A stretch of DNA of 7,593 bases from Octopus sinensis (taxonomy: Eukaryota), in contig NW_021828839.1 in the NCBI RefSeq assembly GCF_006345805.1, positions 1-7,593 on the forward strand, written 5' to 3'. Of the stretch, positions 7,490 through 7,593 are shown one piece after another; the first letter of the stretch is position 1; the number at the start of each line of letters is the position of its first letter. The notes below the pieces were generated by a model that made no database searches, was not told where the DNA came from, and worked only from the letters and a program-made list of their open reading frames with translations. The position numbers and the translations under genes were made by a program.

Positions 7490-7593
7490 GACTGAACGGT
7501 TACATTATCCTGACCAACACGCTTTAGCTCTCGATTATCGAATCGTCGGTTTCCGTGAATGTGCCACGGAAGTGGCACGTTATTTGGTGACGG
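7490..7593 (+). CDS. hey: Hey coding exon (equivalent to exon 5), 3'-partial. Linker GLNGY, apparent 1-nt frameshift, then [29 protein letters not shown] (start of Orange domain)
   Basis: Strong acceptor tttttttcttctgttgcag (AG 7488-7489). Codons from 7503 read [30 protein letters not shown], matching the Hey HALAMDYxxxGFRECxxEVARYL Orange motif. That frame does not match the phase-1 donor at 6837 (see findings). Confidence 0.88.

Follow-up and report, generated by a model that had tools for sequence, protein, structure and literature searches.

A single-base deletion, very probably an assembly error, separates the bHLH and Orange frames of Hey on an unplaced Octopus sinensis contig

The window, by which we mean the whole stretch of DNA analysed (7,593 nt), is the entire contig VCDQ01008376.1, which is 7,593 bp long and unplaced in the Octopus sinensis assembly GCA_006345805.1. 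It was identified by exact look-up of the NCBI protein model annotated on it (P0016, 'HEY1-like, partial', 80 aa), which occurs on this contig only and is the only database protein with a 100% match to the window. To go by the title of the paper cited for it, the assembly was built from PacBio plus Hi-C data. Tandem repeats make up about one third of the contig (2,547 of 7,593 bases masked by TRF). Of the Hey gene it has exons 2, 3 and 4 and, from the last exon, the first 104 nt, all on the forward strand. Hey exon 1 is missing; to judge by the O. vulgaris locus, it would be found about 1.7 kb before the contig starts. At its other end the contig breaks off within the last exon, in coding sequence that is unique; the remainder of this exon (623 nt up to the stop codon in O. 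vulgaris) lies past the contig end, and position 7593 falls about 620 nt short of the part that encodes the C-terminal YRPW motif and TE(I/V)GAF-like tail typical of the Hey subfamily (KPYRPWGTELAY in the orthologues). The Hey locus appears to be fragmented in GCA_006345805.1, because no full-length O. sinensis Hey is present in the 90% cluster of octopus Hey proteins, a cluster that contains the proteins of O. vulgaris, O. bimaculoides and Argonauta hians and has no O. sinensis member. On sequence grounds the gene is Hey, because it combines Pfam HLH and Hairy_orange matches with full collinearity to the O. vulgaris Hey locus (positions 4746-13065 of the O. vulgaris locus sequence, L002, from OX597816.1); the window is also collinear with the O. 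bimaculoides locus (L003). The collinearity takes in exons, introns and repeats, at a divergence of species level.

Exon 2 (3164-3213) reads G|SPSNNCQVTDRKKRRG and encodes the start of the basic region; it is bounded by the acceptor ttgcag and the donor gtaagt, and all 50 bases are identical to O. vulgaris (L002 8624-8673). Exon 3 (6024-6107; IIEK...FEKQ) lies between the acceptor tttacag and the donor gtcagt and differs from O. vulgaris at just one of its 84 nt, a synonymous change (TCC/TCA). Exon 4 (6764-6836) encodes GSAK...LHQK and the first base of a Gly codon, is identical to O. vulgaris at 73 of 73 positions, and ends at a phase-1 donor (GT 6837-6838). The last intron closes with a T-rich polypyrimidine tract and the acceptor AG at 7488-7489 (tract and acceptor 7471-7489, identical in O. 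vulgaris), and the first 104 nt of the last exon occupy 7490-7593, the contig end falling within this exon. All four exons have canonical AG/GT boundaries, in agreement with the original prediction that, apart from the site discussed below, exons and splice sites are intact.

The HLH domain is intact as well (61.1 bits for Pfam HLH on the NCBI model), and its basic region is of the Hey type, with Gly where Hes proteins have Pro. Vertebrate HEY1, HEY2 and HEYL share with the octopus gene the Hey-type bHLH basic region and the Orange domain and are 75-80% identical to it over the bHLH-Orange region, although their linker is shorter (GGKGYFDAHAL, compared with KGLNGYNYPDQHAL in octopus). The last intron is in phase 1, inside a Gly codon, with exon 4 ending at G6836 and exon 5 starting at G7490 (AAA G|gt...ag|GA). 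That this intron is also in phase 1 in vertebrate HEY genes had been stated in the original prediction and is borne out by Amia calva HEY1, in which a phase-1 intron interrupts the Gly codon that follows the Lys closing helix 2 (AAG G|gt...ag|GT).

When the phase-1 donor, whose first intron base is 6837, is joined to the acceptor before 7490, the exon reads GGA CTG AAC GGT TAC ATT ATC CTG ACC AAC ACG CTT TAG, with the stop codon at 7525-7527, as had been predicted; after GLNGY only a tail of seven residues (IILTNTL) follows. The NCBI model is exactly this truncated reading and takes the window sequence at face value. The Orange motif lies in another frame, again as predicted: the frame from 7491 is open through the contig end (34 residues), and 7506-7592 encodes the linker and the first half of the Orange domain solely in that frame, identical to residues 96-124 of O. 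vulgaris Hey. Hairy_orange scores 25.2 bits on this cut 34-aa piece (Pfam cut-off 25.3), compared with 50.6 bits on the intact O. vulgaris protein. Members of the Hey (HESR/HRT) subfamily carry Orange in the same frame as the bHLH domain, C-terminal to it, and in the window, as sequenced, the Orange sequence is out of the bHLH frame because one base is missing. The segment read in the upstream frame, (G)GA CTG AAC GGT TAC (7490-7503; G-L-N-G-Y), is common to all cephalopod Hey proteins examined. Both frames of the window are homologous coding sequence, because lophotrochozoan Hey proteins read ...KG[IL]N[GST]YN[YF](P)D.H...DYR.[VI]GFREC; the switch between them therefore falls between GLNGY and YPDQ.

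Comparison with the Hey genes of related species, which had been proposed as a check, locates the missing base. The genomic DNA of O. vulgaris and O. bimaculoides reads GGTTACAATTATCCT, whereas the window reads GGTTAC-ATTATCCT (GGTTACATTATCCT at the frameshift site); the rest of the exon piece is identical to O. vulgaris, giving 104 matches in 105 positions and one gap. The missing base is one A of the AA pair in the codon AAT (Asn95, within TAC AAT TAT), so that the window has a single A at 7504 where the two other octopuses have AA. The original prediction had placed one extra base at 7503-7506 and offered three ways of restoring the frame; the first of these, TAC AAT, matches the orthologues. 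The window protein is identical to O. vulgaris Hey over residues 22-94 (73 residues) and 96-124 (29 residues), only Asn95 being lost. Past the gap, 88 nt match O. vulgaris base for base and keep the original frame open. The Pfam domains of the intact protein span residues 32-86 (HLH) and 110-146 (Hairy_orange), and the shift, at residue 95, indeed falls between the bHLH and Orange domains. Sequences diagnostic of the two forms of the site are CTGAACGGTTACAATTATCCTGACCAACACG (intact) and CTGAACGGTTACATTATCCTGACCAACACGC (as assembled); a pattern scan of metagenome contigs that permitted either form gave 0 matches.

The closest known system is O. vulgaris Hey itself (CAI9718942.1, P0171, 331 aa), which we recovered by a protein search with a chimeric full-length query; an exhaustive search of representative sequences with the 34-aa Orange piece returned lophotrochozoan relatives and no cephalopod representative. 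O. vulgaris Hey has the same four exons and splice sites and, apart from the gap, shares 310 of 311 exon bases with the window; unlike the window, it has the extra A, an uninterrupted bHLH-Orange-YRPW frame and a gene that is complete from exon 1 to the end of the last exon. In O. bimaculoides (HEY1-like, XP_014767679.1) the site reads TACAATTAT and the frame is intact, with 13 substitutions relative to the window in 311 exon bases. The Argonauta hians protein (P0279) and cephalopod Hey transcripts (P0174, P0281) conserve the junction ...LHQKGLN[GS]YNY[PT] and are all intact. Asn is found at the site in all cephalopod Hey proteins examined (including those of Octopus and Argonauta) and in most of the lophotrochozoan ones examined; its codon is AAC in two cephalopod transcript contigs.

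The exons of the window differ from O. vulgaris by one synonymous substitution in 311 bases, plus the gap, as against 94 substitutions in 4942 positions (1.9%) of non-repeat non-coding DNA, which points clearly to purifying selection on this copy of Hey. The signs of a decaying pseudogene (extra disabling changes, lost splice sites, exons as diverged as introns) were not found, and the introns are retained. The contig gene would accordingly be classed, from these comparisons, as the ordinary orthologue of the single octopus Hey gene. Outside tandem repeats, 22 indels distinguish the window from O. vulgaris in about 4.9 kb. Among the 1-bp differences there are 10 deletions and 3 insertions in the window; with O. 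bimaculoides as outgroup only two deletions, at 1678 and 7504, are clean and specific to the window, and several of the 1-bp indels are derived in O. vulgaris. The number of window-specific indels is about what real divergence alone would give, and taken on its own the error profile does not reveal a poor consensus.

The missing A at 7504 is, in our judgement, very probably a deletion introduced during assembly or consensus building, and the frameshift would not be a real biological feature. This explanation is favoured because the assembly is PacBio-based and the contig fragmentary, with the gap only 89 nt short of its end, because the Asn codon and its surroundings are strongly conserved and the gene is under purifying selection, and because the change is of a kind typical of long-read error. 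Consensus depth is lowest at contig ends, and a 1-base deletion in a short run of the same base is a typical residual error of long-read consensus sequences. The same one-base deletion in a same-base run underlies the truncated or 'low quality' models that arise from single-base indel errors in long-read drafts, and such cases share with the window a small unplaced contig, a gap near its end and an otherwise constrained gene. By our own rough estimate, which was not computed, plausible error rates of 10^-4 to 3x10^-4 per base would give a chance of a few per cent that the 311 exon bases contain an error, against roughly 0.1% for a real frameshift allele in a gene under such constraint. We infer that the loss arose in the assembly and not in the animal. 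The contig would then carry the ordinary, functional, single-copy O. sinensis Hey, a Notch-target bHLH-Orange repressor, in which one A of the Asn95 codon AAT may have been dropped when the consensus of a small, long-read-derived contig was built or polished; the frameshift, the IILTNTL tail and the stop at 7525-7527 would all be artefacts, as would the 80-aa 'partial' protein held in RefSeq and UniRef. The original prediction had likewise preferred a sequencing or assembly indel, and conservation, contig quality and prior rates lead us to the same best explanation, which is favoured rather than proven.

Among the alternatives, the one that fares best is a real germline variant of the sequenced animal, namely a heterozygous loss-of-function allele, possibly on an unplaced contig of the alternative haplotype. 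Alternative haplotypes are often represented by small unplaced contigs, and the indel level of this contig, no higher than real divergence predicts, would fit such an allele, as would the intact HLH domain and the position of the stop in the exon that holds the normal stop codon in O. vulgaris. The product would be a bHLH-only Hey of 101 aa (the 80 aa of the NCBI model preceded by an exon 1 like that of O. vulgaris), without Orange domain or YRPW motif, that could dimerise and bind DNA without repressing; with the stop in the last coding exon, its mRNA would probably not be subject to nonsense-mediated decay. Frameshifts are, however, rare in strongly conserved single-copy developmental regulators, the rest of this gene is under constraint, and the site lies close to the contig end; we consider a real allele unlikely. 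A natural loss-of-function or bHLH-only allele of a conserved cephalopod Notch effector would have modest interest, and greater interest if the population carried it commonly; the fuller possibility, a genuine germline single-A allele whose transcript evades decay and whose 101-aa product might act as a natural dominant-negative modulator of Notch output, seems to us just as doubtful.

A fixed change in the O. sinensis lineage, by which Hey had recently become a pseudogene or a truncated, bHLH-only gene, is far less probable still. It would account for the frameshift itself and for the lack of an intact O. sinensis protein in the octopus Hey cluster, but it agrees poorly with one synonymous change in 311 exon nt where non-coding DNA has diverged by 1.9%, with intact splice sites, and with 88 nt past the shift that are unchanged from O. 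vulgaris and open in the old frame. Hey is, moreover, reported as conserved across metazoans (PMC8166818).

Least credible of all is a correct sequence whose frame is restored at the RNA level. Enumeration of splice combinations yielded two that are in frame and free of stops: the cryptic acceptor AG at 7526-7527, provided by the AG of the premature TAG (exon start 7528), which with the normal donor brings back the Orange frame (HQK|ALDYRIVGF) at the cost of 13 residues, and a GC donor at 6841, 4 nt downstream of the normal donor. The cryptic acceptor, however, lacks a pyrimidine tract, and splicing to it would cut out the conserved GLNGYNYPDQHAL; the GC donor (tac|GCATAT) departs far from a consensus splice site. 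Species whose frame is unbroken, O. vulgaris and O. bimaculoides included, have the same bases at the cryptic sites. Ribosomal frameshifting was rejected, as there is no slippery heptamer at 7498-7506, and so was A-to-I editing, which cannot restore a frame.

If the A was indeed lost in the assembly, as we favour, the value of the observation lies in database quality: RefSeq and UniRef hold an 80-aa 'partial' O. sinensis Hey with a tail, IILTNTL, that is in all likelihood spurious, and with no Orange domain. Anyone surveying Notch-pathway components who accepted this entry uncritically would misclassify O. sinensis Hey as Orange-less or as a pseudogene. The O. sinensis annotation has been reused for studies of O. 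vulgaris. A literature search for a frameshift or for YRPW in O. sinensis gave no relevant result.

The non-coding part of the window contains several repeats. A SINE-like dispersed-repeat insertion of roughly 240 bp (1953-2225) is flanked by perfect 17-bp direct repeats, GCAGACGATAATATATA, at 1953-1969 and 2209-2225; both copies of the 17-bp repeat are present in O. vulgaris, whereas O. bimaculoides has the empty site with one copy, and the insertion therefore took place after the split from O. bimaculoides and before that between O. sinensis and O. vulgaris. A 72-bp core is common to this insertion (1970-2208) and to 5775-5846, in inverted orientation (2035-2106 versus 5775-5846). Another interspersed repeat of roughly 167 bp is present in two direct copies (87% identical) at 3362-3528 and 5335-5501, in introns 2 and 2/3. 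ARAGORN and Rfam found no tRNA or RNA family in the interspersed repeats. Long intron microsatellites, (ACAT/AC)n, (ATT)n, (AGT/AGC)n and (AAT/GAT)n, occupy 960-1545, 3000-3155, 5890-6018, 6180-6630 and 7090-7470, and their lengths differ between O. sinensis and O. vulgaris. An 8-bp unit in intron 3 (GTGGGGAC-like; window position 6128, 20 nt past the donor of exon 3) varies in copy number, with one copy more in O. vulgaris than in either O. sinensis or O. bimaculoides. Ahead of exon 4, the pyrimidine tract (L002 11991-11993, window 6748) reads TCTCTCTCTCTCTA in O. vulgaris and TCTCTTTTTCTG in both O. sinensis and O. bimaculoides, a difference that is either a change derived in O. vulgaris or an error in the O. 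vulgaris assembly.
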